DNA of 64,000 bases, taken from contig BFEA01000020.1 in assembly GCA_003427395.1 (NCBI GenBank), positions 449,645 to 513,644 on the forward strand, given 5' to 3'. A program made the translations under genes and the position numbers. The DNA is from Chara braunii. Its lineage: Eukaryota; Plantae; Charophyceae. This document shows, piece by piece, positions 3,635 through 50,790 of the stretch. The first letter of the stretch is position 1. The number at the start of each line of letters is the position of its first letter. Under the pieces are notes generated by a model that had not been told where the DNA came from, made no database searches, and was given only the letters and a program-made list of their open reading frames with translations.

Positions 3635-3819
3635 GTTGATTCCTGACATCAGTGGGTGATTTGTTTTGCTTTCGCTAATCCCTTGTAACCTGCGCGTACT
3701 GAGGTGTACCTGCGGGGGTCAGGACGCAAACGGAACAAACACCGAAGCTACCTGTGCTTCACCAACAGAGAAGGCAAAAGACAACACCCTCCTTGTGACA
3801 GCCTACGATACGCATATAC

Positions 3820-12629: not shown

Positions 12630-13045
12630 CTTCAAGGCGTATCCCTGCCCAGCTACCTATCCACGTAGGGTGACTATTATATATTGTGCTAGAGGTGAAC
12701 CAGCTATGAGGAGTTTATTCTCGTTGTAGCATAGGAGAATGCATGGTAATGTTTTTGACTCATTGTCATGATCTCGTAAGGTCGCTGCATTGATCTCACC
12801 AAAACAACTTTAAGGTGACTTGTCGTCCCATAAAATTTAACATGTCCATGAGATGTGTTATCGAGGTCATCGACCCCTGCCGTTGCGTCAAGGATCTGCT
12901 TGATTGTATCATGCAATAGTTTATTTCTTTGACCCATCTCATCGAAATATATCGATTTGGCAAAGTGCGCCAACTATACCTCTCACTATTTCTCGTGAAA
13001 GAAAAGGGTATCACGAGGCAGAACTTACCTCCACCGTAAGGGGTG
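12630..13045 (-). mobile_element. Degenerate fragment of the Gypsy pre-gag leader (same family as 47500-47800)
   Basis: gcgtatccctgcccagctacc...agaggtgaaccagct...tctcgttgtagcatagg and gaggcagaacttacctccacc match 47600-47750. Confidence 0.65.
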
Positions 13046-15558: not shown

Positions 15559-16089
15559 TGTAGCATCGTGTTTGCATTGGTGACCAAGCCTGAACGTCCG
15601 CGATCGAACGTGAACGAGAGTCAAAACCCTCTGAACGCGAACACAAAAATAATTAAAAATAAAATAAAATAAAATCATAAATTATATGAAATCAATATTA
15701 CGTAGAATAATTGATGATGATGATTGATGATTAAATCAAATTAAATGGTGAAAGTATGATAATTATAAACTTAGCATGACAAATCAGACAATCACACAGT
15801 CATTCGTATATCATAATCAAACACATACATGCAAGAGACAATGAGTGCGAAAGACAACAATATACCAAATACTAAGTATGTTGTGTAGAATGGTAATACA
15901 AATAACTTTTGTTTGATAGGTCTGTTCAAATTCATAACAAAACTCGAGTTCAAAAAAAAAAAATATATATATATATTTTTTAATCATAAAAAATATATCT
16001 TCGACTGAACATGTTCGGGGGAGATTCAATCGAACAGTTGAACATGTTCGGACGTTCGAAAAAAAAACGAGCATATTCGGTGTGCTACA
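15559..16089. mobile_element. Possible non-autonomous DNA transposon with short TIRs and subterminal GAAC/GTTC motifs
   Basis: Starts tgtagca and ends tgctaca; clustered gaacg motifs at left and gttcgg motifs at right around an AT-rich core. No TSD found. Confidence 0.4.
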
Positions 16090-16379: not shown

Positions 16380-16700
16380 TCGCTCCGACTGAATGCGTCA
16401 ATCATACCTCTCAGGTTCACTACGACAGGATAGGGCCACGAGAGGCACAACTTACCTTTACCCTCGGGAGTTATCACCATTCCTTAGGCGAACATTTCCT
16501 CGTCGAGCGACAAAGCCCCGTGCGAAGGTTTTTCATATGTAATCACAGAGGTGGCTCGATCGAGGGTGTTTCTCATTCGTTGTAGCATTGGGGGGTATAC
16601 GCAGTTAACGCCCGAATCAGACCCACACAAGAATCGTCGCATGAGCCTCTGATATCTCGAACGCAATCCTACGTTGATGTCGGGACAGAAACCCTAACAA
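16380..16700 (-). mobile_element. Degenerate fragment of the Gypsy pre-gag leader
   Basis: catacctctc...ctacgacaggataggg...ggcacaacttacct...aatcacagaggtgg...tgtagcattgggggg aligns with 47560-47760. Confidence 0.7.
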
Positions 16701-25350: not shown

Positions 25351-27807
25351 ACATGTCATGGCGCGATTATCCAGTTATGCCTTGATATGGACGAGGAATG
25401 ATTCACGCTTCCGAACTTACACCTGTTTGAAGGATGAGACAAAGATACCCAAGTGAGACTTGAGGGTGTTTCTCCATCTATGCCAGGTTCATGTTGAGGT
25501 TGGTACTCAAGTGGGCGGCTTCAAGAGCGTTGCCACAAGCTCGTAAGACCATGAAGTCCTTGCGCAAGCAGGCCGTAGTTGAAGGAGGATCGAAGAAACC
25601 GTTAAAATAAGTACTTATTCCCTATGATAAAAAAAACGATTTGAAGCAAGAGGATAACAAGTTGCGTTCCCAACACTAGTGGTAGGCAAGGCAACGAGCT
25701 CCGGAACATTGTTGAGCATATCGGTTTTTGCAGGACTTTATCGCAGAGCGTTGCCGCTCCAGCCGAGTGCGCCATCCATACCTCTCTCGAACCCCTACGA
25801 CAAGATGTGGTTACGTGAGGTACAACTTACCTCCACCTGTCGCTGTCACCATATACAGTGCACTTGTAGCACTACAATTCATTGCACTTGCGATGTGTAG
25901 TAGCGAGAGTTTCAGCTTGAAAGCAGCAGTGTAGCACTCCAATAGATGAAGGTCCAAGTGCGAGGGTGCGTCCTGTACAAGATCCTGATGATGAAGTCTG
26001 ATCCGGATAGCAGGTCGTGATCCCTTAGGTGGGCGTATCCCCATCGAGCTACCGAACCACATGCGAAGGTTTTTCGTATGCAATCACAGAGGAGGCCTGA
26101 CTGAGGGTATTTCTCGTTCGTTTTAGCATAGGTACGTGCGGTTAACCCCTGAATTGGACTTGTGTGTGAATCATTGTCCGAGACACTGATCTCTCGAATG
26201 TGATCCTCCGATGGTCGACTAGGATGGTCAAATATAACCACACGATACACCTCACGCAAACAAAAATCAAACTCCGTACGTAATTGTGCCTAGTCCCTTT
26301 ATCCACATTTGACCCGTAACTTTTACTAGAAGGATCAGACGAGTATCGCACGTGAGACTCTGATTAAATATCGTGGCGACACAGGTCTTAGTCACATCGA
26401 CTAGCCATGCATCAATACCCAAGCAGTCGCAGTGATGACATACCAGATGATGATCATAATCACATGACCGTTGATGGTATTGGGACTCGCTTTCGACACT
26501 CAAGTGTCGGCTGACACACGTCTTGAATGATTAATCTCTCGACGCTAGACAACCGCTAAGGCGGTTGAGAATTCTACCATCTTTTGCACCTTGCACAGAT
26601 CAGTGGTAGACGGGCTTCAAACCCTTGTAGCGGTTGAACACTCCTAACACGGAAAGTGGGTTTCCATCATCGGAGGCCTGGAAAAAGGTCAATGGTTTAA
26701 CTTTGACAGATGCTACGGACTTTAACGTCCAACCAGTAAAATTCAAAGAAGTAAAATATAAAGAAGGATCTTCCTTTTCTCTTAATACAGTTCGATTTAA
26801 TCATTACGAGCGGTCATGGTAGACCACGCGGATACTCATTGTACGTATACAATATGGTTATCGAAAATGAGGCGATCACTTTCACAATCACAGTTTAACT
26901 TTCTTCAAAATATACACATGAACGCAAACAAGTCAAATCTGGACTTCAAATCACTAAACATACCTGCAGTCATATCAAAGATTTCCACATCGATAGGGCA
27001 CACACTACACGGGGTCAACTTCAACCACAATCTCTGCTCACACCCCTTGCCTTATTCACACAAGCCGACACGCGGTTAATGGAAGGCAAAAATTCCGGGG
27101 TTTTTCGCTGCATCACTACAAACAATGTTGTCGAAACTTTTGCAAACAAACTATGCAGGCTCATAATAGAAACATAAAAAAAACAAACAAGCAAAAAAAA
27201 CGAAAAAAGAAAGATGAATGACACTATAAAACTCTATTCGAAGTAACTTTTAAAGTTTGCCCGAACGTTTTTCGAATTCGATGTTTTTGCCAATTTTTTT
27301 GTTACTCGTCCAAAGACGCCGAAACTATATACAAATATACCCTAAAGCTTATAAAAAAAAAAAAAAAAAAAAACAAAAATCAGGAAAATATGACAGTTTT
27401 GGTGAAAAATTCGCCGAAAATGACATAACATATTGATCACGAGTGCACAAGTCCCAACCTTCGTCCATGCTTAAAAAAAAACACACTCAATCCCTTGTTA
27501 CATGACCATTTGATCAAAGTCCAGGTAAAACCTCAAAGAAACATTTTAACCCACAGGGATTAAGGTCTAGGGTTGAGTAGCGAGAATGAATTAGAGTTGG
27601 GCCGGAAGCTAGTAAAACTTTTACTCAATCTGAACAAAAAATACCATCAATACAGCGCAAGTCAGTGCCCAAGCCATGCTTGAGTGATCATGAAAAATTC
27701 CTAGCTTCCCATCTCACCTCTGATATCTACTTGCAAAGCACCTCGAATTTGGACAGTTCTCCTCTATTGCGAGGACAGACTATCATACTTTCGAGGCTCT
27801 AACATAT

Positions 27808-28350
27808 TCTAACTCCTCTAATTTAAAGAAAATTTCGATAGTGCTCCCTGTAAGGAAAACGTTTTTTCAAAATTTATACAAAGCTAAGTAAAGACACTCT
27901 GACTTTATAAAGCTAAATTTTATCTAACTTCCTGAACTTTGGGTAGCATGTCATCTGGACGAGTAGGCTTCTCATATTTTTATTAAGTTCGATATGAGCT
28001 TAAGATAACACTTGAATTTTGCCAAGAAAAAAATCAACTAACTCTTTGGATTTTGTAGAAATTTCGACAACGATTATCGTAGGAAAAATGACTTTCCATA
28101 ATTCATAAAAACTAAATACAAGATAAAAAGTAAATCCAACTTTTACAATTCGAATTTTGTCAAACTCCCTGAATTAGTAAAACTTTGGGCCACATTTTCT
28201 TTTGAGAGGTAGGACTCTCAAATTTATACTAAGTCATATATGAATTCAGATAAAAGTTGATTTTTGTAAAATATAATTTTTAACTAAGTCCTTGGATTTG
28301 CAAAAAATTAGGGAGCACTTTTCTTAGCAAAAATGTCTTTCTAAGATTTG
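27808..28350 (-). repeat. ~120-bp degenerate tandem repeat (5 units) in element A
   Basis: Units start (c/a)taactc at ~27808, 27922, 28037, 28160 and 28283. Confidence 0.75.
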
Positions 28351-28659
28351 TAAAAAAGAAAGAATAAAAAATAAAATTATCCCAAAAAATTATGAAATAG
28401 AACTAGGTAAAAGAAGCTTAACTAAGAAAATGCAGTGATTAAACTAACTTCTACAACTTCAACAAATAGTGAACATATAAAACAACTACCTATCAAAGCT
28501 AAGACTTAAAACAAGTCGAACTCACACTCAACCACATGCTGATTCATTCCACAATGAATTAGTATTCTTACAAAATCCCCAAGTTGTTTTTCACACAAGT
28601 AGTTCATGATCTCTCATTTGAGTAAAAACTCAATACCTTAGCTTACATATGGCATCAGA

Positions 28660-29445
28660 AAAACTAGAACATTCAATTTATAAACAATATCCCGTCTTTT
28701 GCATTTGCTTATAAACAAAACACAAAGCACAATAATTTTTTTTTTCTCCATTGGGCATATGACTAAGCTATTAAACTCAGAAATGTTGCTTCGTCGCCTC
28801 GACCTTATTTAATATCGAAGTTATATATATATTTTTTCAATTTATAATAAAAAACGAACGTATAACTGAATCATTTAACTTAGAAACAAATGTTCAGTCT
28901 GCCAGATCTGATTATATTTTTAACTGAATAATCTCTTCTTTTAGTGATAGGCTATAGTCAGACCATTCAACTTAAAAACCCTGTCTGACTAGCTTGTTCA
29001 TCTAAAGTATACAATATAATATTTAAGATTTTTTTTTTTTTTTAATTTCTCTGTTTGTCAGACTAAGTCATTCAACTTAGAAACAATACATAGTCTCAAC
29101 CTCAATTCCCTTAGAAAAAAAACACAGAAAGAGATGAGTCATTCAACATAAAAACAAATACTCATCTCTCTCATTCAGAACTTAAAGAAAAACAAGGATC
29201 TCTACATCATTCAACTTACAAATAAATGTCAAAAGTCTGTTGAGAAACTTTCCCAAAAAGCAGGTAAACAAAACCATTAAACTTAGAAATAAATATTTAA
29301 CCTATAAAAACAAACCAATTGTGTCTCCCAAAACAAAGCCACATCGACCAAACTATTTGACTTAAAAACATTATCTGGTCCATTAAAAGAAAAAAGAAAA
29401 AAAACATAGCAGTCATGCGATTCAACTTAAAAACAATGTATGACC
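28660..29445 (-). repeat. Stem-loop array A (about 9 units; core CATTC-AACTTA-RAAAC on +)
   Basis: For example tagtcagac-cattcaacttaaaaaccct-gtctgacta (~28955), agagatgagt-cattcaacataaaaacaaat-actcatctct (~29130), gtcatgcg-attcaacttaaaaacaa-tgtatgac (~29412). Confidence 0.8.
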
Positions 29446-29504
29446 CTTTATATGACTCACAACCTCAATGAAGGCGACATTCCCCCAGTTCAATCTCTTT
29501 TTAT

Positions 29505-29971
29505 GTAGGTTGTTTTACCGGACGTCCGGGACCACTGGGTTGTCCGACCGGACGTCTGGTCGGACGTCGGACGGACTCGGACCGGACAAGGGTTGTCCGG
29601 CCTAGCGCAAAAAAAAAAAAAAAAAAAAATCTTTTTTTTTTTTTGTTGAAAAACATCATGTGGCTTCTACCTTGCATAAGGTGTATGCCACCAAAATTTT
29701 GGCTCATTTGAGCCAGTAGAAAAAAAGATAAAAATCTTCAAAGTTTTTAATCCCCACCTATACCCACCCCTCCTATCCCCACGAAAACCCCTCGTACCCC
29801 CCCTCCCACCCCAAATAGCATTAATAGCCAAAAAGTAGTTGTCTGGGATCCCAGATAACCTCCCAACCGGACGGTTGGGGGAGACGTCCGGGCGAGACGT
29901 CCGGCCATCGGACGACTGGTTGGGGGGTTGTCCGGGCGAGACGTCCGGCCATCGGACGACTGGTAACCTAA
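29505..29971. mobile_element. Non-autonomous hAT-like insertion in element A
   Basis: 8-bp TSD CTTTTTAT (29497-29504 and 29972-29979); ends gtaggtt / aacctaa; subterminal clusters of ggacgtccgg/cggacgac motifs at both ends; absent from the homologous region of B and C. Confidence 0.75.
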
Positions 29972-32900
29972 CTTTTTATTCTAAACTCCAAACAAAATTT
30001 GAAGAATAAATTTGAAGTCTTATGCATGCGTCCCTTTACTTTAGTCTGAGTTAAGTCCAGAAAATCAATCAGAAAACAATAAGGATGCGTGCATTCATAG
30101 AGAGACGTGCACATAGGGGTTTGAACAAAGTTTATAAAAAGTCTTTGTCTACCAAACTTCTTCCGAGTCCCAACAAGGTCCCCGCAATCGGTGGGCAGAC
30201 TTCCTATAGAGTCTTGATGCGGTCCTATGGGTTGCAATCTTGCCTGCCGCCTTCCTCTCGTAACCTTGTACTAGACTTAGAGTAAAAAGGACAACAGGAG
30301 GGGTTTCAGACTCTTGAGATACATGAGAGGGACAACTCAACTTGTGTGACAGGGTCTTGGTAGGCTTCGATCGTGTGAGGGTCCCGAAATGGTGGCTAAA
30401 AGTCTCAACAATATGGTTGTATCGAAGATATCGCAGAATGATGGTTCTCCGACAGTCCTTCAATTTGCAGCAATGACTTTTCTGCCGAGCCTAATCACTT
30501 TCTCGAGGTTGCAACACCGTTTCTCCTCACCGAACTGATGCTACGTATGCCCGAAAATTAGTGTTTAAATAAAATACACCCCTTTGCTCCATTTGAAATG
30601 CAGATATAATCCAGTAAAGCTTGATAACCCCAATGTGCGCAGTAATCGTAGGCATGGGCATGACAAAATAGTAATGCTCTTCGGTGTGTCCCACAAACCT
30701 AACCAATTACGACAACAACTAACAAGCACCCCGCTCACAGCAATCACGAGCAAAAGTCATGCACCGCTGCAATGCCCCAAAACACGTAGCAGAGGGTGCA
30801 GTTCCACAATAACATAGCTTAGTAGAATTCGTAGCTTAGCAGAAACTCGTAGCTTAGCAGCAACAACAACCGAAACACAACTTCCTTGTACTACAAATTT
30901 GAACTCCTCCTACGGAGGCCAGTTCCAACGGAAAGGTGTGGGCGACTCACTCTAACTAACACAGTCTACTTTATCCGCTCACCAAATTCGATGCTAAAAG
31001 CACGCTTGCTCGCCTGATTGTGAACAACCTGTCCACTCGTTTGACTGTTATTAGCATGTTAACCTGCTGCGCTACTATGAATGCCTAGATGAAGGTTACT
31101 TACGAGCTAGAAAATACAAAAAAAAAATTAGGATAAATCTTCCGCTAGAATCTAGAAATATACACTGCTTTCCAGCCACGCATGCAGAAAGATAGTGAGG
31201 CTACTTCCACCATTAGGATCAACAAAGATTGAAATGAATCCTCTGCTAGAATGTGAGAAAATACTTTGATGCTTCATGCAGAAGCTGCACGATACCAACC
31301 GCACTACCTGGTAATCCTCTCTCACTCTCTCTCTGCCCTTTCGGATCAAAGCTATGCTCCGACCAGATAAGTATAACGTTGGGAAGTACGATCTCAAACA
31401 TGGAGGTAGAGAGTATTATTTAAAGAAGAAACGACTACAATCATGAACACAAAAAAAGTCATCTAAGCAAAATAAAGATTGGGATTACGATTGTCCATAT
31501 GTTCTATCTTACAAAAAAAGAATGAGGATGAATCTTCCACTTAAACACAGAAAAATACATCACTGTACTTCAAGAAGATATGTGTTTCTCCCCCTCGTGT
31601 AACTCCCCCACACTGTGTCACCAAGTCCGCTGCTTGAATCTCAATTTCATTTTCGTCATTCATCCCGCCATATGTAAAAACCTCGGTTAAATTTTTTACT
31701 CTGTCCGATTCCGTCGAGAATCGGATAAAATTTATGTTTTCTAACACCACCATATCCACACTCCATGACACTTTCGCGCACATTCTTCTTCTGTTAATAC
31801 TAGATATACTAATCTAGCAACGAAACTAACCTCACAATTGTATCAGCCTTGCCTCAAAACCCCAAGAATGAATGAACACTTTCGAGCACCTTCTTCTTCT
31901 GTTAATACTAAATATACTAATCTAGCAATGAAACTAACCTTACAATTGTCTCGGTCTTGCCTCAAAACCCCAAGATCGACGCCTCGTTCGCCCGATTTCA
32001 TTATGGAACAAGCGAGTTACAAATTTTCTACCCCTCTCAAATTATCTTTCACCATCTCCTTCGTTTGATACATTTGGTATGGATTCGCAACAAATTTATT
32101 TTGTCCTTCCTTGCATTTGCTGCCTCCACTTTCCCCGTCTCCTTTGGTCTTCTCCCTCGTCGTTGTCGAGCGCATCGGTCCAGCACCACACGAGGCAGCC
32201 CGGGACCTTTTCGGTCGCGTCACGCATGAGTTGGTTTTACTCCTCGTCGCTACTGCATATGGAGCTTCCGCAAGCCGCTCCGGCCGAGTGCGCTAGCCAT
32301 ACCTCTCGCGAACCCCTATGACAGGATAGAGCTTACGCAAGGCACGAAGCTGTCACCTCCCTTCGGTGGGCGTATCCCTGCCGAGCTACCAGTCCACAGT
32401 ACGGAAGCTAATCAGTTGCAATTGCAGAGGTGGACCAGCCGATGATGTTTCTCGTTCGCTGTAGCATAGGGGGTGCGCGCGGTAATACGCCTCTATCGGA
32501 CCCGCACACGAACCAACATCTTGGGGGGTGAGGTCCCAAGTGCGACTCATCGTCGGTCGACTAGGACGCATCCCACACGCCACGCGCACACCACTATAAA
32601 GAACATAAAAATAAATACACGTACACACTTACGGACATATACAAAACGACACTGGACAAACAACGAGACAACACTCCTAGTCCCTTAGTGACCATCCCAT
32701 AACTTTCAAATGCGGAAATCGGATAGGCGTCACTCGCGAGACTTAGTATAAAACCGCACTGACGTAGGGCTAACTCATATCGACTAGCAATGAATGAATA
32801 CACAAGCAGTCACAATGATGGCGTACTATGTAGTGCCCATAATCAAGTGGTCCCTCGTGGATCCGAGTATCGCTTATGACACTCAAGTGTCAGACTCGAA

Positions 32901-33844
32901 GTATTGTGAAGGTTTTCCCCTTCACGATATTGCATGGCTGAAGGAATAGCTGTGTGACCACCGCGACACCTCCGGCCTTTAGGCTAAGTGTCTCGGAAGG
33001 TAGGGTAAATAGGGTCTTTGAGGGGGGAGATACCTTCTATGCAGAGTTTAGGACCTGGGATGTCTTGGACAAGGACCTCGAATCCGGGCCCAGGACCAAC
33101 GTCCGCCTAAGAAACGTTTAAGAAGCATACAACAAATAAAGAGGTTTTCTTATCTTTCTCAGTCTCAACCCTAATTTAACCCTTAAGCGTGGGCCCTCTA
33201 GGACCACGCGAACACCAACATAGGTATATATGCATATACATGTAAAGGGGAATAAGTATGTGACGACCACTTCTCACAATCACTGTGGGACTCCTCACAG
33301 CCATATACAAGTCCACACACTACACGAAGTCAACTTCAACCAACCTCTATACTCATACCCCTTGCTTTAGCCATACAAGCCCCAACCCTTGTCCAACCAA
33401 CCATAATTAAATACTCAGTACCTTTGTTAAATGACCATTCAATACAAGTCCGGATGAAAACCTTAATAAAACAATAAAATCACCAGGGCTAAAACCGTTT
33501 AGGTTGAGTATTGAGGGTGAACTGGAGTTGAGTCGTAGACCGACTGATCGGCAACCGACCTGTTATCAGTGATAACAGAAGATGATCGTTGTAGGATCAA
33601 GCTGAATCTAGCCCAAATCCTGAATCAATTCGATCGAGAAGACATGTAACACAAGACAAATCAATCCCCAAGCTAAAATCATAAGTGTATGGAGAATACA
33701 ACTCCATAACCTATTATCGTGCAAGATCCTCCTACAAGCTAGGGCTAGGTCTGCCTCTAAGCCAGTGCCCAAAGAAAGATAGACCCTGATAGAGTCTCCT
33801 CTATATAGAGTGGATTGCTAGAATTGCCACATGTCAAAATATAA

Positions 33845-34410
33845 TCTAACTCCTCTGAACTAAGAAAATTTCGGCAGCGTTCCCCGTAGGAAAAGTGCCC
33901 TCTCAGAATTTATACTTACTCAAATATGAAAACAAAAAAACCTCTAATTCTGGAAAGCCAAATTTTGTCTAACTCCCTTAATTAGTAAAAATTTGGCCAG
34001 CATCTTCTTTAGAAAGGTAGACTTCCCAAATTTATACTAAGTCAGATAGAATCTCCAAAGTTATACTTTGAGTTCAACTTCTAGACAAAATTTAACTAAC
34101 TCCTTAGATTTGTAGAAATTTTGGCAGTGTTTCCCGTAGAGAAAGTGTTATCCCAAGATTTATACAAAGTTAAGTTCAGAATCTGAAGTGACTTTGACTT
34201 CTCAAGGTTCTTATCTAACTCCTTGAATTAGTAAAAATTTGGGCAGCATTCCCTTTAGAAAATGAGGTTTTCCAGATTTTTACTAAGTCAAAAAGTCAGA
34301 AAAACTGGATTCTTAAAAAGACGAAATCTGACTAACTCTTTCGTTTTGTAGAAATTTCGACAGCGCTTCCCGTAGAGAAAATGACTTATAAAGATTTATA
34401 CAAGACCAAG
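33845..34410 (-). repeat. ~120-bp tandem repeat (5 units) in element B, each containing a long hairpin
   Basis: Units at ~33845, 33968, 34093, 34213, 34330; for example ttagtaaaaatttgg...ccagatttttactaa is a 15-bp stem. Confidence 0.85.
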
Positions 34411-34651
34411 TATAATAAAAGATCCCAGAAAATGCAGAAATTGAAACTAACTCATATAGCTCTAGCACGTGGCGAGCAACTAAAGCAACTACCTATCAAC
34501 TGAAACACAGACTAAGAAATAGTCGCACTCAGTCTCATGCAGACCAAACCACAGAAGTAGGTACTCTCACCTCCCTAAAGTCAACTTATCAAACAATAGT
34601 TCATAGTCTCACAATGATTTATCCCTTTATACCCAGCTTACACAGGGCATA

Positions 34652-35380
34652 AAGCTAGACCACCCAAACTTATGGAACATGTCTAGCTTAGCCATGGAGT
34701 ATACACAAACACATGGCACAACAACTTTTATCTTCTTTGAGCATATGACTAGGCCACCCTAGTCGCCTTAAACTGTTTAAATATCCCAACTTTATATATT
34801 TGTCTGCACTTAGTCTTTTGAGGTAGCATATAACTGAACCGATCATCTTCAGCTCAAGATTCAATCTGCCCCTTCGTACCACAACTTTATTCTGAATTAA
34901 TACTCTCTTCAATTGGTGATAAGCTATAGCCAGACCACCCAAACTTATGAAACCCTGTCTGACTAGCCTGTTCATAAGTAATATAGTAATAAAATATAGC
35001 CAAATTATAACCTACTGGTTCTAGCATGTGCGAGGCGTTGGACCAAGACCACCCAAACTTATGGAACATGTTTTGGTTCTCAGCCTGATTCATTTCTCTT
35101 AAAACCAGAGAAGGAAGAGGCTGAGCCACCCAAACTTATGGAACATGCTCAGACCTCCTCGTTCAGGAACTAAAGAAACTGACAAAAACCCAAAGTAAAC
35201 AAGGCGGCCAAGCCACCCGAACGTATGGAACATGCTTGGTCTCTGAAAAGTCATTCACAGTCAGCCTCCACAAGTTAGAGTAACTAGACCACCAAAACTT
35301 ATGGAACATGTCTGGTTCTCCAGGCAATTCAAAATAACATAGCACTTGGCCTCCCCAAACTTATGGAGAAATGCCCAACC
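34652..35380 (-). repeat. Stem-loop array B (7 units; core CACCCA-AACTTA-TGGAACAT on +)
   Basis: aagctagac/gtctagctt (34652-34689), tagccagac/gtctgacta, ggaccaagac/gttttggttc, ctgagc/gctcag, ggccaagc/gcttggtc and aactagac/gtctggtt each flank a near-identical ~20-nt core. Confidence 0.9.
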
Positions 35381-38277
35381 TTTCATAAACCCTGTCAAAC
35401 TCAAGTAAAACAACCTTCCTCCCATCCTTCCCCGAGATGCAATCCCACAATATTCTCTCAGTCAAACAATAAAACTGAATCTGACATTGTACATTCGTTT
35501 CTTTACTTAGTCTGGTCATGTCCGGAAGTCAAACTGAAAGTCAAAGTAGGGATGCACACAGTATACTCAGTCAAAACATAACAAGGAATGCAACTAGGGG
35601 TTATACTGGGTTTATAGAAGGGGATGAAAGGTTACCTCTCAGTTTCCTGCCGTCAAAACTCCTCCTAAGTTCCGGCATAGCTCCCGCAATCGGTGGGCTG
35701 ACTCCTCACAGAGTCTTGTTGCGGTCCTACGGGTTGCAATCGGGCCTGCTGCCTTCTTCTCCTAACAGAACTAGACTGAGAGAAGGAAGATAGAACGAGA
35801 GGTTTAAGACGCTCGAGATACAGGAGAGGGACAACTCAAGTCCCAGGAGAGGACCTTACCTTTACTCGCCGAAGGGACCCGCAATGGTGGCCGAAGTACA
35901 CAACAGCCTGGTCAAACCGAAGTCAACAATCCACTGTCGACCTTATGACAACTCCCTAATTCGCAGCAACAACTGCACTCGCCGGTCAAATCACGTCCTC
36001 AAGCCACACTTCCTCATGCCTGGCTAAGACCCCACACCTCAGCCTAGAGTGACCGCTCTAAATAGAGTGCGCCTCCTACCCTGTGCACTTGTTCAAACTT
36101 AGTACTACTACAAGGGAAGCAGCACACACATCAATCGTACTGAACAGCCAGCTCCGCAACAAAGCTTAATGCAAACGCAATAAGACCCTAGCTCCTTATA
36201 ACATCCTTGCACATGCAGCCTACAGTAGCACATGGCGCAGTCCGCAAGGTTCAACAGCACGCTCAGCAGCTCAGCAAAGTGCACAGTAAGTGCACTGTTC
36301 ATACACAACAAAGCGCAGTATACGCTAAAAATAGCTCAGCCCGTCAATAACAACCACTGACTGTTGCAACACAGTCGCCAACATCCTACGAGTTGGCAGC
36401 GTATCCTGTTGACGTCGTCAACAACCCTCGAGATGCCTGAAGATGTCGACATTGTAAGCCACTGCCAAGCCGGGTATGTGCCTCGCATCACCATCCTCCC
36501 CTCGTTTTTTCTCTTTCTCTGTGTGCGACGCTCAATTCCAACCCGACTGCCGGTTGCCTCCCTTGCTGTTACGCTCACTATCTGTAGTAGTTACCCACGC
36601 CTATCACATTCTGCAGTACTTTGGTATACGTGACACGCCGACTATCGATCATAGTTGTAAGCACTACATAATACCAACGGACCGAGTAATGAGCACATAG
36701 CCCATGCTCGTGTACGTGCGTGCTCGTCGAAGGGAGAGTCTTCCACCCATAGGATGTCTCGATGCCCCCCTTCGCACTCGGACACACCGACCAACAGGTA
36801 AGTCTCTGTTCTCGCGGCTGGCCTCACGCTCGTTCCCGCCGATAAGATCAGCAATTCCGAGAAAAGGTTAACCGACCCCCCATTTTTCACCTCAATTTAT
36901 AAGAAAACCATAAGGCCATCCCAAACAAACTTCACACCAATCTATAGAGTGCACTTCTTACTAACATATTATTAAAAAAAACACACATAAAAAAAAATTA
37001 AAAACACATAAAATAGCAACTCAAAAGTGCATTTTCAGGCAATTTTGCCAAAAAATAACTCCATCAAAATTTCAGGATTTTCAGGATGATTAACAACACA
37101 ATTTGACCCCGAAACCCTAATTTCAGGATCATTCATCGTTACCCAAGGCTGAAAAGTAGGGGTCCCCGTTAACCACTTGCGCCAACTGAAACTTCCGCTA
37201 GGACACGAAAGTATATACTGCAGTCCAGTCGTGCACGCAGAGATATAGAGAGAGGTTGTTGCCATCAGTTCGATAAACAAAAGTCGAAATGAATCCTCCG
37301 CAATAATTCTGTTTTCTATAGCCCCCTTCTCCTTCATACAACTCAACCTCGTCGCACTATCAAGCCTATGCTTTCGAGGCTACATCCGTCGATGCCATCA
37401 TACTCGCGGTGGTTATGAACCTCAAGCTAGCCATCTTTCCCGCTCGATTTCACTGAGAGTCGAGGGTAATATCCATCTTCCCACATTCGCCATATCTCTC
37501 ATTCCCCTGCCTCTGCGCACTACCTTTCTCTATTAGCTCCCATCCTACTAACCCATCCTCAAAACTAACATCCCCAGCGGACTCGCCCGACCTTAGAACC
37601 TTCGATTATCACTTTCTCCCATCCGTTTTATCGAGTAACGGGCGCGATCTTTGATCTCGAATCCTCTCGCCATTTTTTTTCCCGATACCATGGCGCACGA
37701 CTTTTCCTTTTTAACTCTCGATTCGCTAGCCTAGTATTAAAATTAATATCAGATTCTGCTTCGCCTGGTTCCAGAACCCCTGGCTTCTCCGCCCCGATCT
37801 ACGAAGAAACATCCATGCCATCGTTTTCTCTGCCTGCCCCTGTGCCTGCTTTCTGCCATCTTCGTTGTTAAGTGCACATAGCGTGGTATACCGTCCAGGT
37901 TCGTTTTTTTCTCACTGTGCCCGCTGCCTCAACGCTCTGCCTCTTACTACTGGTGCAGTCCCTCCCCGCACGGGACCATCCGATAACGCTTTGCCCAGTC
38001 CCCTCTAGCTCCGCTATGCCTGCCTACTGCCTTCACCTTCCGTCCCTGTCTGCCCCTGCTCAACCCCGCCATCGCTTACCTCGCCTTGAATGTACCTCGC
38101 GGGGTTCACGTCCAGGTTCGGCCAGTTTGTGCTGGCCTCGTCCCCCTTTCTCTGGTAACCCGTTCTTTCCTTTTGCCTAACTCTCCTGCTGCCCATTGCC
38201 AGCCTCTCCCTCGCTCGCTAGCGGCTTCATGTGCACCCGACGCCGATGCACGTCCACATTCATTTTCTGTTATATTC

Positions 38278-41951: not shown

Positions 41952-42347
41952 CTAAAAATCAAACATCCATATATAGGTGAACCATCTAGCTATGGTCGGG
42001 TCTGATGGCGAAAAATTGTTGAGAGAATACATGAGCGTTGTTGGGTCAATTATGAGGATAAACCTCCTTCCAAAACGGTGATGCCAGAAAATTATTAGGC
42101 AACGCAGAACTATCAAGACTTCATTTTTGAATTGCGAGTAGTTCCTTTCCGTTGAGTTGAGTGTTCGGCTTTCGAATCTTAACGGCCTTTCCTTCCCACT
42201 ACTGTCTGCCTGGATCAAGACACCTCCCAAGACGGTCGCCCCAACATCGGTTTCAACCATAAAAAGTATTTCCATAGTTGCATCAAAATCTGACACCCCA
42301 AACACTAAACCTCTTTCTTTAAATTCATTTTTCAACTCCTCGACCAC
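41952..42347 (-). pseudogene. Gypsy RNase H domain
   Basis: FMVETDVGATVLGGVLIQ...ERPLRFESRTLNSTERNYSQFKNEVL...FILIIDP. Confidence 0.9.
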
Positions 42348-42503
42348 TTCTTCGTGAAGGGCACCCCACTCCCAATTCTGATCCTTTCGTACTAGCTTCC
42401 TCAGATGCTCTGTCTTTGTGACAAATCTTTCTATGCACCTCCTCCAAAATCCACAGGCTCCAAGGAAGCTACGTACTTTTCCAATATTTTTTAAGGGAGT
42501 CGG

Positions 42504-44220
42504 TCATTCCAATATTTTGTTAGTTTTCTTACCATTGGGTCTTCGACCGTATTCATTGTATACATATCCCACAATGGTTACTTCCTTCACACAATGCCTT
42601 GACTTCACGCCATTGGCAGTGAGTTTATACTCTAACCCTTGGACATGCTCCCATAGGAACTTTCTTATCCCATGAGCCACTTCTAATTTATCTTTCTCAA
42701 TAGGGCCCTTGACGACGAGGTCGTCAATATATGCCTCAGTAATCTGAGGGTTGATTGGCTGCATCACCCTGATCATACTGCGCTGCACCACTGCCGCAAC
42801 ATTGGTTCATCCTTGTGGTGCAACATTCATATGGACTAACCCTCGAGAAGTGTGCATTGCCGTTATAGGACGGTCTGCAGGATAGACCGAAAATTGATCA
42901 TACCCTGAGTAGAGGTCAATAAGGGATACAATCGATCTTCTTGCGCAAGACTCTGACAGTTGATCAGCGTTAGGCAATCCCCCAGCATCCCTCACGATTA
43001 CCACATTCAATCGTTGGAGGTCTTGTACCCATCTGAGCACCCCGTTTGGTTTTACAAAGCAAAACCAATGAGACGCATATGATCCGCTAATAAAGCTTGC
43101 AACATTCGTACGGATCTTCCCATCTAGGTACTCCGCCACCTTTCTATGATCTTCAGGATTGCGGTACTTAGCCCCTCGAACATTTCATGACTCGTGCGAC
43201 ACAGTATGAATGTGGATCATTACGATTTTATCCACAGTTGATGGTCGACCGTATTCATTGCATACACATCCCAGAATGGTTACTTCCTTCAAATAATGCC
43301 TTCACTTCACTCCACTGGCAGTGAGGCTATACTCTTCCAAGAGATATATAATCTCTCTTAACCGTTGGACATGTTTCTATACGATCTTTTTTATCCCACG
43401 TGCCACTTCTGATTCATCTTTCTCATTATGACCCTTGATGACAAGGTCGTCAATGTATGGCTCAGTAATCTGAGGGTTGATTGACTGCATCACGTTGATC
43501 ATACTGCGCTGCACCATTGCCACAGTGTTGGTCCATCCTTGTGGTGCAACATTTATATGGATTAACCCTCGAGGCCTTTGCATTATCGTTATAGGACGGT
43601 CTGCAAGATAAACCGAAAATTGATCATACCCTAAGTAGAGGTCAATAAGCGATACAATTGATCTTCCTGCGCAATACTCAGACAGTTGATCAGCGTTAGG
43701 CAATTCCCCAGCATCCCTCACGGTCACCACATGCAATCGTTGGAGGTCTTGTACCCATCTGAGCACCCCGTTTGGTTTTACAAAGCAAAACCAATGAGAC
43801 GCATATGGTCCCCTTGAAAAGCTTGCAACATTCGTACAAATTTTTCTATCTAGGTACTCTACCACATTCCTATGATCTTCAGGATTAGGGTACTTAGCCC
43901 CTCGAACATTCCACGGCTCGTGCGACACAGTATGAATGCGGATCATTACGATTTTATTCACAGTTCATCGTCGACCGTATTCATTGCATATCAATCGTTG
44001 GAGGTCTTGTACCCATCCGAGCACCTCGTTTGGTTTTACAAAGCAAAATCAGTGAGACGCATATGGTCCACTAGAAAAGCTTGCAACATTCGTACAAATT
44101 TTTCCATCTAGGTACTCCAACACCTTCCTATGATCTTCAGGATTGAGGTACTTAGCCCTTCGAACATTCCATGGCTCGTGCGACACAATATGAATGCGGA
44201 TCATTACGATTTTATCCACA
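42504..44220 (-). pseudogene. Gypsy reverse transcriptase, two near-complete tandem copies plus one internally deleted copy
   Basis: WFCFVKPNGVLRWVQDLQRL, SLIDLY.GYDQF, NVAPQGWTN and YIDD motifs in 43377..43961 and again in 42504..43139 (W to stop); partial copy at 43971-44220. Confidence 0.92.
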
Positions 44221-44781
44221 TCCAACCGTCCACGCTAATCATCATTGAAAACATATGCTCCATGCTTTTCACGCATCAAGTTCCTTACTAGAGCCTGCTC
44301 CTGCTTTGTTAAAAACTCGGGTTCGCCTATTATTAGATCTTTCTCCTTTTCCTCATTGATGTGGCAAAGTCTATTCGTTATCTTTTCCCCCATTTGTGTA
44401 TCAATTCTCTCTCATGTTCATAGTACACTCATTCTTCTTGACTTACCAGGACTGGTACTGGATGATTTTTCTTATCTGTCATCTTGCACCGCCTTTTGGA
44501 GCCCTGCTTGAGTCGACCCCTAAAAAATGCTTACCAACAACTTGAGCATTTGTTGCATGTGGTCCTTCCATTCAGGAAGGAGGAGGTTTATACATAAGCT
44601 CAAACCTCCCGCCTTCCGGATCTTACACTCTTTTGATAAGTGTCGTGACGACATCCGGATCGGTCATCCCATAGGTTGACACCATCTCAACTACTTCCGT
44701 AATACATGACAGGCTTAATACGAGTCCATCAGTCTTCTCATCTTCTGTTTTTTCTTCGTCTTCTCCTTCTAGTTTCATTCG

Positions 44782-45444: not shown

Positions 45445-47485
45445 CTATCGTTTCTTTTGCGTGGTCTCATCCTTCTTCGTCTTGCCTTCTTTAATTCCTT
45501 GTTTCCTTTTTTTAACCCTGATCTCCGATTGCTTCTCTTCTTCCTCCCGAAGCTTATCATCCTTATCCTCACCACCTTCAAAAGTAATAGATAACTCTGC
45601 CTCGACTAATTGGGAAGTCTGAGTCTGTTCCTTTGGCGGGTTATTACTTCTAGTTTTCCGAGTTGCATACGGGATCGTTCCGGTGACATTCCTATGGCTT
45701 ATCCTAGTTCTGAAGGCCATATTCGGTCTAAAAACCCTCGGGTTTGGTTCGCTTGGTCCTCCATCTAGTCCTTCCTGCCCCATGGTCAACATTCTTGGAG
45801 GTCTGATCTCAGTTTCTCCATCTCCATCATATATTTCTTGCAGCCTCAAATGCAGTCTCTGCATTTTATCTACTAAATTTTTCATTATTTCAAACGTTTC
45901 CTTAACACTGATACTTACTTCCTCCTCTCTAGCTTCCTCGCTGATAAAGTCTTTTCTCTTGACTTCCCCGATTCTCATCTTACCCATCTTCTCCTCAAGA
46001 CCAGTTACATCCTCTACTCGGATGATAGGGTCTTCCTTCTCTTGCCATATTCTAAACATGGTCGAAATGTTGGGACCTATCCGAGCCATTCAGAAGACTT
46101 CTTTCCTCGTGCCTCGCACAAGCGGTTATCGGGTAGCTAAAAATTCAGGAATGAAAATTCTGAAGTGGGAGTTTTTGACAGTCTGAAAATCCCGAATGGT
46201 CCTGAAGTGGTGAAAGGTTCGAAGACCCTGAAAACCACCTGTTTAGGCATGCTGCATCCTGAAGTGGTGAAGGGTGTCCTGAAGTGGTCAAGTGAGACTT
46301 TTGTGTAATCTGAAAATCCTGAATGGTCCTGAGGTGGTGAAAGGTCCGAAAACTATGAAAACCACCCTTCACCACTTGAGGATGCAACTTGCCTAAACAA
46401 GTGGTTTTAAGGGTCTCCGGACCTTTCACCACTTCAGGACCATTCAAGATTTTCAGAACTGAATGGTCCTGAAGTAGTGAAAGGTCCGAACTTCCTGAAA
46501 ACCACCTGTTTAGGCAGGCTGCATCCTCAAGTGGTGAAGGGTGTCCTGAAGTGGTGATGAAAAATACGACTGTTGTTAACCTTCTCTCGTGCCTCGAGGA
46601 ATGTTGGCATCGATTAGCTGCCCCTTTATGTCAAATACGTGCCCATCTATGCTTGAGGTGATATGTCCGTCAAGCTCATCGAGCTCCCGTACGTGACATT
46701 TTTTTACCGTGTGTCCTTTGATTTGACAATGCGTACATATGCACTCACTATAGTCCACCCAACCTCGTTCGTATCCTTGCCCATTCCACTGACCATTTCC
46801 TCTACCATACCCCCTGCCGTAACTTTAATCATTCCCTTGGCCAAAACCTTATCAAATATCCTTGACCCACTTGATTGACTCCCATTTGTTGTGACTCTCA
46901 ATTTCCCATTTGTTCGCTATTACCTTTATTATTCATCCCCCATTCTCCCAAACCGTGACTTCTCCCTGCGTTTCTTCCTCTTCCACGACCTTGTCCTTGG
47001 CCCTGGGCTTGAGTTTGATTCTGACTGCTTTTGTGACTTGATCCTGGTTGTTCCTTACTCCTTTGTTGATCCTGTCTTGCTCCTTGCTCACCTCCCAAAT
47101 TCTAGTTTTGTGGTATCATCGGATAAGGTCCCATGGGTCCTTGCATCAGTCACGGTCCCATCGGGAAATACCTGAGCCACGCACCCATCGACGGCCCCAT
47201 GGGCCATTGTCCGAACTGAGCCGTGCTTCGTGACGGGTCTTGACCGTACTGGACTATCGCTTGTTGCGAGACCTGTCCTTTCCCCGTACCTTGTCCTCCC
47301 ATGGCTAAATTTCTTGTTTTTCTTGGACACTTTGTCAATTTAACTGCTATTTCAGAATCCTCTTCTTCTTCATCCTCGCCTTCTTCATTTTCTTCTTTCA
47401 GCTTCCTCTTTCCCGATGGTTGCGTTGTCGAGCGCATCGGTCCGACACCGCACAGGGCAGCGCGGGACCCTCTCGACCGCGTCAC
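45445..47485 (-). pseudogene. gag C-terminal region (Gly/Gln-rich, CCHC knuckle), interrupted by an insertion; capsid domain apparently deleted
   Basis: CTHCQIKGHTVKKC in 46576..46758; 47150..47485 and 46898..47098 share one frame; 45445..46089 continues after the insertion. Confidence 0.8.
46117..46585. mobile_element. 469-bp foldback-type insertion in gag with an 11-bp flanking duplication
   Basis: CTCGTGCCTCG at 46106-46116 and 46586-46596; an internal ~95-bp unit occurs direct (46183, partial 46310, 46461) and inverted (46363-46456). Confidence 0.75.
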
Positions 47486-48511
47486 GCAGGAGTTGGTCTA
47501 AATCCTTCGTCGCAAATATACATGGAGCTTCCGCAAGCCGCTCTGGCTGAGTGCGCCAGCCATACCTCTCGCGAATCCCTACGACAGGATAGGGTCTGCA
47601 CGAGGCACGACTTACCTCCACCTTACGGGAGCTGTCACCTCCCTTCGGTGGGCGTATCCCCGCCGAGCTACCAGTGCACAATACGAAAGCTAATCAGTTG
47701 CAATCACAGAGGTGGACCAGCTGGGGGCGTTTCTCGTTCGCTGTAGCATAGGGGGTACGCACGATAATATGCCTCTATCAAACCCGCACGCGAACCGACA
47801 CACTGGGGAGGCTGAAATCCCAAATGCGGCCCGTCATCGGTCGACTAAGACGTATCCCACTCACCACACGCACACCACTCTACGAACACAAAAACAAAAC
47901 ACACACACAACGACACGCACGAAACGACACAACACAAACAACGAGACAACGCTCCTAGTCCCTTTGTAACCATCCCATAACTTTCCGATGCAGAGTTGGA
48001 TGGGCTCCGCGCGCGAGACTTAGTATAAGACCGCACAGACGCAGGACTAACTCATATCGACTTGCAATGCAAGCGTACGTAAGCAGTCGCAATGATGGCG
48101 TACTATGTGGTGCCCATAATCAAGCAGTCCCTCGTGGATCCGAGTACCCCTTATGACACTCAAGTGTCAGACTCGAAGTATCGTGATGGCCTGATCCCTC
48201 ATGATATTGCACGGCTGAAGGAATAGCCGTGCGGTCACTGCGAGACCTCCATCCTTTGGCTTGAGTGTCTTGGCAGGCAAGGCAAATAGGCCCTGCACGC
48301 GGGCAGATCCCTTCCCTGCAGAGAATAGGGCTTGGGATGTCCTGGATAAAGACCTTGAATCCCGACCCAGGACCAACATCGGATTAATGAATCCTTAAGA
48401 AACGAACGAACAAAAGGAAGGACCTTCCTTGTTTTTTTTTTTGTCAACCTTAACCCCTAAGTAAGCCTCTGGTACGAGGCCCCTCAGGCCACGCGAACAT
48501 CCAGTATAGGT

Positions 48512-48562
<51 letters not shown>
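48512..48562. repeat. (CA)n(TA)n microsatellite
   Basis: Direct reading. Confidence 0.95.
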
Positions 48563-48566
<4 letters not shown>

Positions 48567-49244
48567 AGGGGAAGTAAGTTATGTGGCGATCACTTCTCCC
48601 AGTTTCAGTGGGGCTCCTCACAACCATATGTATATGTGTGATCATAGGCAGTCAAATCCAAAATCGAACCACAGAACATACCTGCAATCACATCAAAGAG
48701 CCCAACAAAGTCCACGCACTACACGGAGTCAACCCCAACCAATCTCTACACTCATACCCCTCGTTTTAGCCATGCAAGCCCCAACCTCCTGTCCAACCAA
48801 CCATAATTAAATACACAGTACCTTTGTTAAATGACCATTCAATAAAAGTCCGGGTGAAAGCTTAACGAAACAATAAAGTCACCAAGGTTAAAGACTTTTA
48901 GGTTGAGTATGGAGGGTGAGTTGGAATTGAATCGTAGACCAACGAATCGGCGAACGACTTGTTGTCAGTGATAATAAAAGGCGATCCTCGTAGGATCAAG
49001 CTGGAACTAGTCCAAGTCCTGAATCAAACGGTTCAAGAGGACCTGTGACACATAACATGCCAAATCCTCAGGCTAAATCTATAAGTTAACCGGAGAGTAA
49101 TCTCCATATCACGTTCTTACTCAACTCACTCTAATTAACTAAGACTAAGTCTATCTCCAAGCAAGTGCCCAAGAAAAGGTAGACCTTTGGCAGAATTTCC
49201 TCTATCCAGAGTGAATTGTCAAAATTGTCACTTGTCAAAATATA

Positions 49245-49570
49245 ATCTAACTCCCTAAACTAAGAAAATTTCGGCAGCGCTTCACATAGGAGAAGTGTCT
49301 TTTTAAAATTTATATCAGTCCGAATATGAAAACAGAAGTAGTCTTTGACTTTCCAAAGTCCTATTTTGTTTAACTCCCTGAATTACTATGAATTTGGGCA
49401 ACATTTAGAAAATAAGACTTTCCAAATTTTTACCAAGCCATATATGAACTTTAGACAAGTTGAACTTTGAAAACTCAAAATTTGACTAACTCCTTGGATT
49501 TGCAGAAATTTTGGCAGCGCTTCCCGTAGAGAAAGTAGCTTACCAAAATTTATACAAAGTCAAGTATAAC
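49245..49570 (-). repeat. ~120-bp tandem repeat (3 units) in element C
   Basis: Units start taactcc at ~49248, 49371 and 49487; homologous to 33845-34410. Confidence 0.8.
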
Positions 49571-49849
49571 AAATGATCTCAGAAAATGCAGAAATTGACC
49601 TAAGTAAAATGAACTTAGCTCAGAAAATACATGAATTGAAACTAACTCCTATGGCTCTAGCACGTGGCGAACAACTAAAGCAACTACCCACCAATTGAAG
49701 CTCAAACTAGAGTAGTAGTCGCACTCAGTCACATGCAGGCCAAACCACAAAGGTAAGTACACTCACCATCCCAGGTCAATTTGAACAAACAATAGTTCAT
49801 GATCTTTCAATGATTCAACCCTTTATACTCTGCCTTAAATAAGGCATAG

Positions 49850-50790
49850 GGTCAGGACACCCAAACTTATGGAATGAACCTTACCTTAGCCAGACCTAAA
49901 GTCAGGCCACCCAAACTTATGGAATGAGTCCAACTTAGCCAAAGTATACACAAACACAGGGCACAACAACTTTTCTCTTCTTTGGGCATATGACTAGACC
50001 AATCTAGTCGCCCTGATCTGCTTAATAGCCAAAGTATATATACCTCTCTGAACTTAATGTTCAAAACGGGCGTAGGACTGAGCCGGTCATCTTAGAATTA
50101 ATGCTCAGTCGGCCCAAGTTACCTTCAGTTATACTCTTAATTATAGTCTCTTCAGATTGTGATAAGCTATAGTCAGACCACTTAAACTTATAGAACGGTA
50201 TGATTAACTTGTTCATAGATAAAATAATAATAAAATATAGCCAAATTATAACCTTGGGTTCCAGCAAGTGCGGGCTTTAAGTCAGACCACCTAAAGTTAC
50301 AGAACATTCTGACTCTCTGCCTGATTTATTCCTCTCTGATCCAAGTTGTGTGTGGCATTGGGCTAGACCACCTGAACTTACAGAACGGTCTGCCCTTTGT
50401 CAGGTTCATTTTCTCAAAATAAAGCAGAAAGAGACTGAACCACCTAAACTTATAAAACGACTCAGACCTTCTCATTCAGAACCAAATAAACAGAGGAAAG
50501 TCCAAAATAACCAAGGCAACCAAAACACCTGAACTTACAGAACGCACTTGGCCACTGAAAAAGTCAATCACACGCAGCCCCCTCAAGTCAGAGCAACCAG
50601 ACCACCTAAACTTATAGAACAGTTTGGTTCTCAAGGCAATCCCACAACACTAGGTCTTCCCAAACTTATGGGGACTTCCCAGCCTCCAGAGCAATCAGAC
50701 CACCTAAGCTTATAGAACGGTCTGACGCTCCACGCAATCCAAAATAAACCATAGCACTGAGTCTCCTCAAACTTATGGGGACTTCCCAGT
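49850..50790 (-). repeat. Stem-loop array C (about 11 units; core mostly CACCTR-AACTTA-YAGAAC on +)
   Basis: For example gggc(t)agac-cacctgaacttacagaacg-gtctgccc (~50360), aaccagac-cacctaaacttatagaaca-gtttggtt (~50595), tcagac-cacctaagcttatagaacg-gtctga (~50695). Confidence 0.88.

Follow-up and report, generated by a model that had tools for sequence, protein, structure and literature searches.

Five iron-responsive elements stand in a row in the 3' untranslated region of the transferrin receptor, and these are two-stem hairpins with a fixed hexaloop, CAGUGN, carried by a 5-bp upper stem next to a C bulge or a UGC/C internal loop; the row binds protein multivalently. Retroviral packaging hairpins, such as the gammaretrovirus leader pair and HIV-1 SL1-SL4, are located in the 5' leader, from the primer binding site to gag, and are read by the zinc-knuckle nucleocapsid. 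The constitutive transport element (CTE) of Mason-Pfizer monkey virus is one long hairpin with two loops that binds a host export factor. The Su(Hw) array of Drosophila gypsy is made up of duplex-DNA sites in the 5' untranslated region, which are bound by one protein and have no hairpin character. Among plant Ty3/gypsy elements of the Tat/Retand/Ogre type, family-specific arrays are common in the non-coding parts, with a function stated there as unknown; these are head-to-tail tandems found with Tandem Repeats Finder (TRF) and lie mostly between pol and the 3' LTR (PMC11963269, PMC7004042). Enhancer repeats have been described in the U3 region of retroviruses and of tobacco Tnt1 (PMC3601003). 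The hairpin array analysed here, from Chara braunii, belongs with known kinds of feature, namely the cis-acting hairpins of retroelements and the repeat arrays of LTR retrotransposons; literature searches returned no description of such a hairpin array.

Host element and location of the arrays

The window, which is the whole stretch of DNA that was analysed, comprises 64,000 nt of Chara braunii assembly GCA_003427395.1 (contig BFEA01000020.1, positions 449,645-513,644, forward strand). It contains a degenerate Ty3/gypsy element whose two LTRs, LTR-A and LTR-B (Table 1), are direct repeats of approximately 3.8-4.0 kb around an internal part; alignment of LTR-A with positions 47423-51354 gave approximately 75% identity. 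The minus strand was taken as the sense strand of the element because the RT and RNase H remnants lie on it. The proteins closest to the RT remnants were Chara braunii gene models of the same assembly (GCA_003427395.1), at 77-81% identity, and a protein search with the RT ORF returned only fragments of another family. Assignment to Ty3/gypsy was based on the LTRs, RVT_1, and RT_RNaseH in the window and, in the relatives, on the order RVT_1, Integrase_H2C2, rve and on a primer binding site and purine tract. No protein matches were returned for the gag ORF or for an ORF within the array; through the knuckle motif in the gag region, the element's own Gag may bind nucleic acid.

Neither a primer binding site nor an integrase is present in the window element. 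Approximately 60 nt including the primer binding site have been deleted between two CGACA repeats (47421-47430), the RT region carries a 726-bp tandem duplication and an additional partial copy (42633-44242), and the internal part, from which the integrase is missing, has no match to the relatives beyond approximately position 41517. Self-priming of the Tf1 type was considered and rejected, as the LTR holds no complement of the post-LTR sequence and the primer binding site has simply been lost. Further fragments related to the LTR end occur at 63843-64000, 12621-13042, and 16381-16633, one of them inverted at the window edge, and indicate several insertions of the superfamily in the window. 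LTR-C contains a GC-rich insertion (29500-29960) with repeated GGACGTCCGG-like palindromic pieces and long A/T runs inside, which may be a small inserted element. Abrupt composition shifts were observed upstream of the elements, where a segment of GC 0.60 (10001-12000) is followed by one of GC 0.27 (14001-16000).

The array that had been noticed from the sequence alone lies inside LTR-A, 590-1320 nt from the 5' end of the LTR in the sense direction and over 2 kb ahead of both the LTR end and the primer binding site. Arrays are present in all three LTRs of the window, in LTR-A at 34652-35380 and in the other two as given in Table 1. A three-way LTR alignment placed the units as positional orthologues, with the unique spacers conserved between the LTRs and some units in LTR-B beyond those of the other two. 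A sequence-only reading had assigned the array to a leader or LTR; the LTR part of that assignment holds in three LTR copies, and the leader between the primer binding site and gag, which is where packaging signals are located, does not apply.

Table 1. Positions of the LTRs, coding remnants, hairpin units, and promoter motif in the window, and of tandem arrays at related Chara braunii loci (CM, covariance model)
Feature	Position	Strand	Evidence or remark
LTR-A, 3' LTR of degenerate Ty3/gypsy element	32165..35971	-	TGTTGCTGCGAATT at its minus-strand start, 35971; ends read from sequence
LTR-B, 5' LTR	47426..51400	-	Direct repeat of LTR-A
LTR-C, third LTR copy of the same family, AT-rich, decayed	25753..30392	-	Successive BLAST matches with LTR-A and LTR-B
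RT and RNase H remnants	41952..43961	-	Pfam RVT_1, RT_RNaseH
Candidate zinc knuckle CX2CX4HX4C, gag region	46696..46737	-	Regex match in sense-frame translation
Unit A1	34652..34689	-	9-bp lower stem, internal loop, 4-bp upper stem, hexaloop UAAGUU; CM 60.7 bits, E 3e-14
Unit A2	34927..34965	-	CM 34.7 bits (R1), 45.9 bits (R2); fold
Unit A3	35041..35078	-	CM 56.2 bits
Unit A4	35118..35155	-	CM 56.7 bits; fold -25.9 kcal/mol, z -4.3
Unit A5	35205..35242	-	CM 53.4 bits; one loop change
Unit A6	35281..35318	-	CM 55.0 bits
Unit A7v, variant single hairpin, 6-7 bp stem directly on the same hexaloop	35345..35385	-	Partial CM match 35354-35367; fold z -2.0
TATAAA, putative promoter element	34626..34631	-	Approximately 20 nt downstream of last hairpin; kept in LTR-B; TATAAG in L025
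LTR-B array	49849..50790	-	CM (R2) E 1e-9 to 3e-6
LTR-B two-stem units, first five	49849-49886, 49899-49936, 50170-50206, 50279-50315, 50360-50395	-	
LTR-B two-stem units, last four	50432-50468, 50517-50554, 50594-50630, 50692-50728	-	
LTR-B variant units	near 50659-50672 and 50768-50777	-	
LTR-B candidate of second type, weak	50075-50111	-	E 0.29; 8-bp perfect stem by eye
LTR-C array	28955..29446	-	Core decayed to UUC-UAAGUU-GAA type
LTR-C units	28955-28991, 29060-29096, 29131-29168, 29199-29234, ~29266-29303, 29345-29381, 29410-29446	-	Sequence and stems
162-bp arrays	L002:1744-2629; L004:1848-2477, 21670-22111; L020:4525-5083, 27180-27810		
68-bp arrays	L005:1573-1870, 3267-3818		

Hairpin fold, covariation, and strand

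The 20-nt core CACCCAAACTTATGGAACAT was located in LTR-A without mismatch at 34661, 35050, and 35127, with one mismatch at 35290, two at 35214, and three at 34936, and a variant seventh core with five mismatches was located at 35352. The sevenfold recurrence reported earlier for 34652-35380 was thus reproduced as six cores with 0-3 mismatches and one variant with five, and it was obtained by chance in 0 of 100 shuffles. The array consists of six two-stem hairpins and one simpler variant, each of the six having its own closing stem of 6-10 bp. All six closing inverted repeats quoted in the earlier reading are present, four of them with one or two transition mismatches (G.T or C.A). The 5' and 3' flanks of the same unit pair far better than flanks swapped between units, a value that none of 20000 permutations reached (15 units). 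Unit A1 has fold z-scores of -3.9 (sense) and -4.9 (antisense), and the lower stem of unit A4 reaches approximately 13 bp over 35113-35160.

The units are not TRF-detectable head-to-tail monomers: Tandem Repeats Finder reported no array between 33000 and 37000, and the 30-nt flanks of paralogous units are identical only at random level (25-27%), the identities within one LTR being 0.23-0.32 for the flanks, 0.88-0.94 for the cores, and 0.49-0.69 for the arms. The spacers are therefore unique, as had been read from the letters. All units share a common fold on either strand, made up of a lower stem, an asymmetric internal loop (AUGU/UG or GU/U), an upper stem of 3-5 bp, and a hexaloop. The upper stem CCA/UGG proposed earlier for the sense strand is present, with a length of 4 bp including a U.G pair instead of 3 bp, and the hexaloop described as invariant proved to be near-constant, since unit A5 has one change and the related subfamilies have A, not U, at loop position 5. 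In LTR-B both bases of one upper-stem pair are changed in seven of nine units and a single base in none of the nine. The LTR-C units are decayed; the first two gave covariance model matches at E 4e-6 and 6e-4, and the rest are weak. A second hairpin subtype, with a UUC-UAAGAU-GA core, was observed beside the main type within one LTR (weak candidate at window 50075-50111; L025:6033-6068 and approximately 6137-6170); its counterpart in LTR-A is decayed and lies in the 275-nt gap between A1 and A2.

Two covariance models were used. Model R1 was constructed from five ungapped sense-strand units and the two-helix structure, and searches were performed with filters off; model R2 is broader than R1. 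With a cutoff of E<0.02, R1 retrieved 17 units from the 64-kb window, every one of them on the minus strand within one of the three LTRs; neither model found a match at E up to 1 in 183 kb from seven other Chara braunii loci. Such a model had been suggested with the sequence-only reading, together with a comparison against Rfam, and it retrieved array units only inside the window LTRs and in elements of the same family. No Rfam 15 family matched at the gathering threshold across the 64 kb; in E-value mode (E up to 5) the arrays gave only a sub-threshold chance match to a lncRNA, E 3.1. Scans of viral and metagenome collections with the exact core pattern found only single stemless chance matches in coding DNA. 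The earlier impression that the motif had not been described agrees with the absence of an Rfam match and of any likeness in the literature searches.

Covariation was assessed for the 17 window units and for a set of 56 matches comprising 44 distinct units. Model-based alignments were used because a MAFFT alignment of all units put the B-type stems out of register. Among the window units, 90.1% of the stem cells of the alignment pair, against 75.7% in shuffles (0/500), and 12 of the 13 pairs change on both sides. For the 44 distinct units the paired fraction is 89.9% of cells, compared with 74.6 +/- 1.0 after shuffling (0/500), doubly changed cells number 142 against 44 +/- 10 (0/500), the covariation score is 0.616 against 0.342 (0/500), and both-sided changes again occur in 12 of 13 pairs; these values come from alignments fitted to the model and from units related by descent (orthologues, LTR pairs), so that the cells are not independent events. 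Controls with slid partners gave 23-53% paired, and RNAalifold, applied to the same model-fitted alignment, returned the same two helices with a compensatory change in 11 of 12 pairs. The claim that stems differ between units while pairing is kept, beyond what plain duplication explains, is borne out by the covariation in both sets.

The upper stem, which lies inside the core, covaries as well: pair 19-30 is C-G in 19 units and U-A in 20, and the loop-closing pair is A-U, C-G, or G-C among units. Such covariation would not be expected of a double-stranded binding site. The conserved columns are the loop and internal-loop bases, and the stems vary; many of the stem differences are single pair swaps rather than whole-arm copies. 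Complementary stems of free sequence combined with fixed unpaired bases are the usual signature of a protein-binding RNA hairpin, and the units would fit it. The core type is UCCA-UAAGUU-UGGG in window A, UCUA...UAGG in window B, UCCA-UAAGAU-UGGA in L025, and UUC-UAAGAU-GAA in L023, L024, and window C. From one subfamily to another the core changes jointly in all units, and the arms and spacers stay orthologous; this concerted change would fit either co-evolution with an element-encoded partner or very short conversion tracts.

Mean fold z-scores are approximately -1.9 (sense) and -2.3 (antisense), and since fold energies and z-scores are alike on both strands, thermodynamics selects no strand. 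A fourth pair, U.G, is added to the upper stem on the sense strand. At this pair, 18-31, 25 units have U-A and 15 have U.G, and because of the U.G the pair is formed only on the sense strand in the window A and B types. Non-Watson-Crick pairs of the lower stems, scored strand-symmetrically, divide in the old window copies into 10 of G.U type and 10 of A.C type, as neutral transition decay predicts. In the younger loci L023-L025 there are 20 sense G.U against 8 A.C pairs (binomial p=0.036, with units that are non-independent, being orthologues and LTR pairs). Together with pair 18-31, the modest bias in younger copies is suggestive of sense RNA or plus-strand DNA. The view that wobble counts leave the strand unsettled is accordingly correct for fold energies and for the old copies, in which G.T and A.C are equal, and has to be modified for the younger copies, which lean towards the sense strand.

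The position of the array in the transcript was approached from the TATA motifs and from LTR conservation. Conserved TATA boxes flank the array, at 35616 upstream and 34631 downstream, and more are found further downstream, where approximately 125-bp repeats (33835-34403), each with a sense TATAAA, are conserved in LTR-B, LTR-C, and L022. Assignment of a transcription start from TATA boxes was rejected, as several are conserved and the upstream one (35616) is not kept in L025. The final approximately 750 nt of the LTR are the part best conserved between subfamilies (approximately 83%) and behave as expected for R-U5, for which reason the array was taken to lie in U3, where it is probably located. 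Located in U3, the array would form part of the 3' untranslated end of genomic RNA, and at the DNA level it would precede the promoter.

Related elements and the variable LTR slot

The first seven related loci were collected through the RT matches closest to the query. Six of these are sister families, whose LTRs align with the window family in two short blocks only and hold no unit; the seventh is L022. Three further loci, L023, L024, and L025, were reached via relatives of protein P0036, and their LTRs are approximately 70-76% identical to the window LTRs, where each LTR gave 8-10 model matches, exclusively on the sense strand. Within L024, and likewise within L025, the two LTRs are approximately 96% identical to each other, and in L025 the nine units detected by the model score identically in both LTRs. 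Stems are therefore kept in younger copies, in which they are also cleaner than in the window copies; their loss there had been named earlier as an outcome that would count against the fold. A family primer binding site, TGGCGCCGTTGCCGG, which we take to match the tRNA-Asp type, and a purine tract, GGAGAAG, lie beside the LTRs in L022-L025. In the young members the primer binding site reads TGGCGCCGTTGCCGG(G/A)GAT (L025:9587-9606, L024:8623-8642, L023:21347-21366).

The array occupies a variable slot of the LTR. In the related 3' LTR at L022:23494-24808 the whole slot is absent and the first approximately 380 nt join the region downstream of the array, so that the array is not indispensable for such an LTR to exist. 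The number of units per LTR ranges from 0 to 11, and the model found none in the related families, whose slot holds other arrays; the hairpin array therefore has the family-specific sequence and variable copy number of tandem arrays. In L002, L004, and L020 a 162-bp tandem with a strong TGATAAGA...TCTTATCA hairpin lies at the same relative place in the LTR, and in L005 a 68-bp tandem is present, the unit of which folds into a multi-stem hairpin with a hexaloop, a fold that does not differ significantly from shuffles. The hairpin of the L002-type unit is strong and almost invariant. These sister arrays indicate that hairpin-forming modules recur in this slot and provide no covariation test, because the units are too alike (L002 type) or the fold is not significant (L005 type).

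A separate 9-bp hairpin was observed approximately 280 nt from the 5' end of the LTR (window approximately 51085-51107, minus strand; L022:23795-23818; L002:1219-1241), with a decayed copy at window positions approximately 35655-35680. It falls in the only block of the region that still aligns between the window family and the L002 family. Comparison of the two families shows both-sided changes in two of its stem pairs and, on the sense strand, a G.T that neither family has lost.

Explanations and comparison with known systems

The observations describe an array placed in the LTRs whose units share a fold, covary in their stems, and are retained in younger copies, and they mark a structured single-stranded nucleic acid element, most likely RNA. 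We infer a role as RNA, folding of the sense strand, and a position in U3. The explanation that we regard as probable, with moderate confidence, is an array in the sense RNA that would bind several copies of one protein. Each LTR has 7-11 hairpin modules, and genomic RNA would carry these in its 3' untranslated end. At the base of a module would be a lower stem, 6-14 bp long and free in sequence; above it would come an asymmetric internal loop, in which G-U is fixed on the 5' side and U/C-G on the 3' side, and an upper stem of 3-5 bp topped by the hexaloop UAAG(U/A)U. Selection would maintain the fold and the unpaired bases, and many hairpins in a row would provide avidity for an oligomeric partner. 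As the core is uniform within an LTR and different between subfamilies, the partner is more likely a co-evolving protein encoded by the element than a fixed host factor. The candidate is the element's own zinc-knuckle Gag, which might select its own RNA or assemble on it; the role could lie in packaging, RNP assembly, export, or stability.

A reading that acts on duplex DNA was weighed against this, in which the approximately 20-bp core would be a transcription-factor site repeated in U3 and the inverted-repeat flanks would arise from arm-to-arm template switching, not from selection of the fold. We judge it unlikely. The array does lie in a variable LTR slot and ends approximately 20 nt upstream of a TATA kept in LTR-A and LTR-B (TATAAG in L025), and the strand-symmetric fold strength is as such a site would have it; regulatory tandem repeats in U3 are known (PMC3601003), and template switching can create or homogenise inverted repeats, promoters included (PMC8794818, PMC13100816). 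The covariation, however, reaches into the core, with its upper stem of 3-4 bp, the conserved positions are the unpaired ones and form no contiguous block, and arms that differ between units would be unreadable by any factor. Cruciform extrusion from a duplex is unlikely with approximately 20 nt between the arms, and a one-strand G.U excess in young copies is unexpected from strand-blind mutation. A pattern in which unpaired bases are fixed and paired ones covary argues against a duplex transcription-factor site. Resemblances to the MADS CArG box, MYB AC elements, the U1 snRNA/5' splice site, and the tRNA anticodon arm were set aside as imperfect, and none of them explains the stems.

Template switching during replication or reverse transcription could also keep the arms of a duplicated, hairpin-prone unit complementary without any function. 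Cores that are 88-94% alike between random flanks would then need constraint or very targeted conversion, the loop bases are kept across subfamilies whose LTRs are approximately 25-30% different, and many stem differences are swaps of single pairs, all of which makes a neutral by-product improbable even though one template switch can yield apparent compensatory changes (PMC8794818), the related L022 LTR exists without an array, and the copy number varies from 0 to 11 between LTRs. Equal folding on both strands, and the early copying of the LTR into both DNA strands in the established scheme of retroelement replication, would be compatible with hairpins that act in the single-stranded DNA of reverse transcription (minus-strand cDNA, which corresponds to the window plus strand, or plus-strand DNA), for instance in RT pausing, strand transfer, or nucleocapsid binding. 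This appears quite improbable, as no known step requires an array at this position and the sense G.U/G.T bias speaks against the minus-strand cDNA form. A functional fold on an antisense LTR transcript (window plus strand) is very improbable: the upper stem would lose pair 18-31 (C.A) in all A and B units and the younger copies have 20 sense G.U against 8, set against slightly better plus-strand z-scores and, in LTR-A alone, more G.T than A.C pairs on that strand.

The preferred reading of a protein-binding array in the sense RNA may be extended, tentatively and with rather low confidence, to a self-recognition barcode, in which the element's own Gag would read the loop and internal-loop bases and pick its own genomic RNA among those of co-resident families. 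Co-evolution of tag and reader would explain why the core changes jointly in each LTR and the unit-specific orthologous stems are kept. A barcode of this kind would be a natural retrotransposon counterpart of the operator arrays of phage coat proteins and would suggest a function for the family-specific arrays of plant-lineage Ty3/gypsy elements, for which an explanation has been lacking. In the present case the array is so diverged that only a 38-nt hairpin remains, with the signature of a selected fold, which suggests a single-stranded, probably RNA-level role for at least this array. The hairpin is also a compact, testable object, with a defined fold, a covariance model that is clean on approximately 180 kb of control sequence, and Gag as a candidate partner. 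A specific binder, if it exists, could explain how related families separate their RNAs, and the hairpin might then serve as an orthogonal RNA tag.

Several described systems share part of this architecture. As in the CTE, conserved internal loops recur and helices covary, and the RNA structure would lie towards the 3' end of the genomic RNA; the array differs from the CTE in being made up of separate hairpins, without sequence likeness or an Rfam match. With the Su(Hw) array it has in common about a dozen short motif copies, separated by unique spacers, in non-coding sequence of a Ty3/gypsy element, whereas its units are hairpins and are placed in the LTR. The short family-specific modules, in a variable LTR part upstream of a TATA, resemble the U3 enhancer repeats, which, unlike the Chara units with their covarying stems and unpaired conserved bases, need no fold. 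Packaging hairpins are likewise cis hairpins of retroelements with conserved loops and covarying stems, and the Chara gag carries a CX2CX4HX4C knuckle; the Chara array, in contrast, is an LTR feature that precedes the primer binding site by more than 2 kb, and its hairpins are far more numerous. As in Tat/Retand/Ogre elements, family-specific modules of variable copy number occupy untranslated parts of large green-lineage Ty3/gypsy elements. The Chara array differs from theirs in its position inside the LTR, in being TRF-negative with unique spacers, and in that only the 38-nt hairpin, a fold with covariation, is common to the units. Membership among the iron-responsive elements was rejected on the loop (UAAGUU/UAAGAU on the sense strand, AACTTA on the antisense strand), the upper stem of 3-5 bp, and the lack of an Rfam IRE match at E up to 5. 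With a loop of UAAG(U/A)U in place of CAGUGN, and with an algal retrotransposon as its host, the array is nevertheless closest in architecture to the row of iron-responsive elements, sharing with it a fixed hexaloop, a fixed bulge or internal loop, free covarying stems, unique spacers, and several copies.
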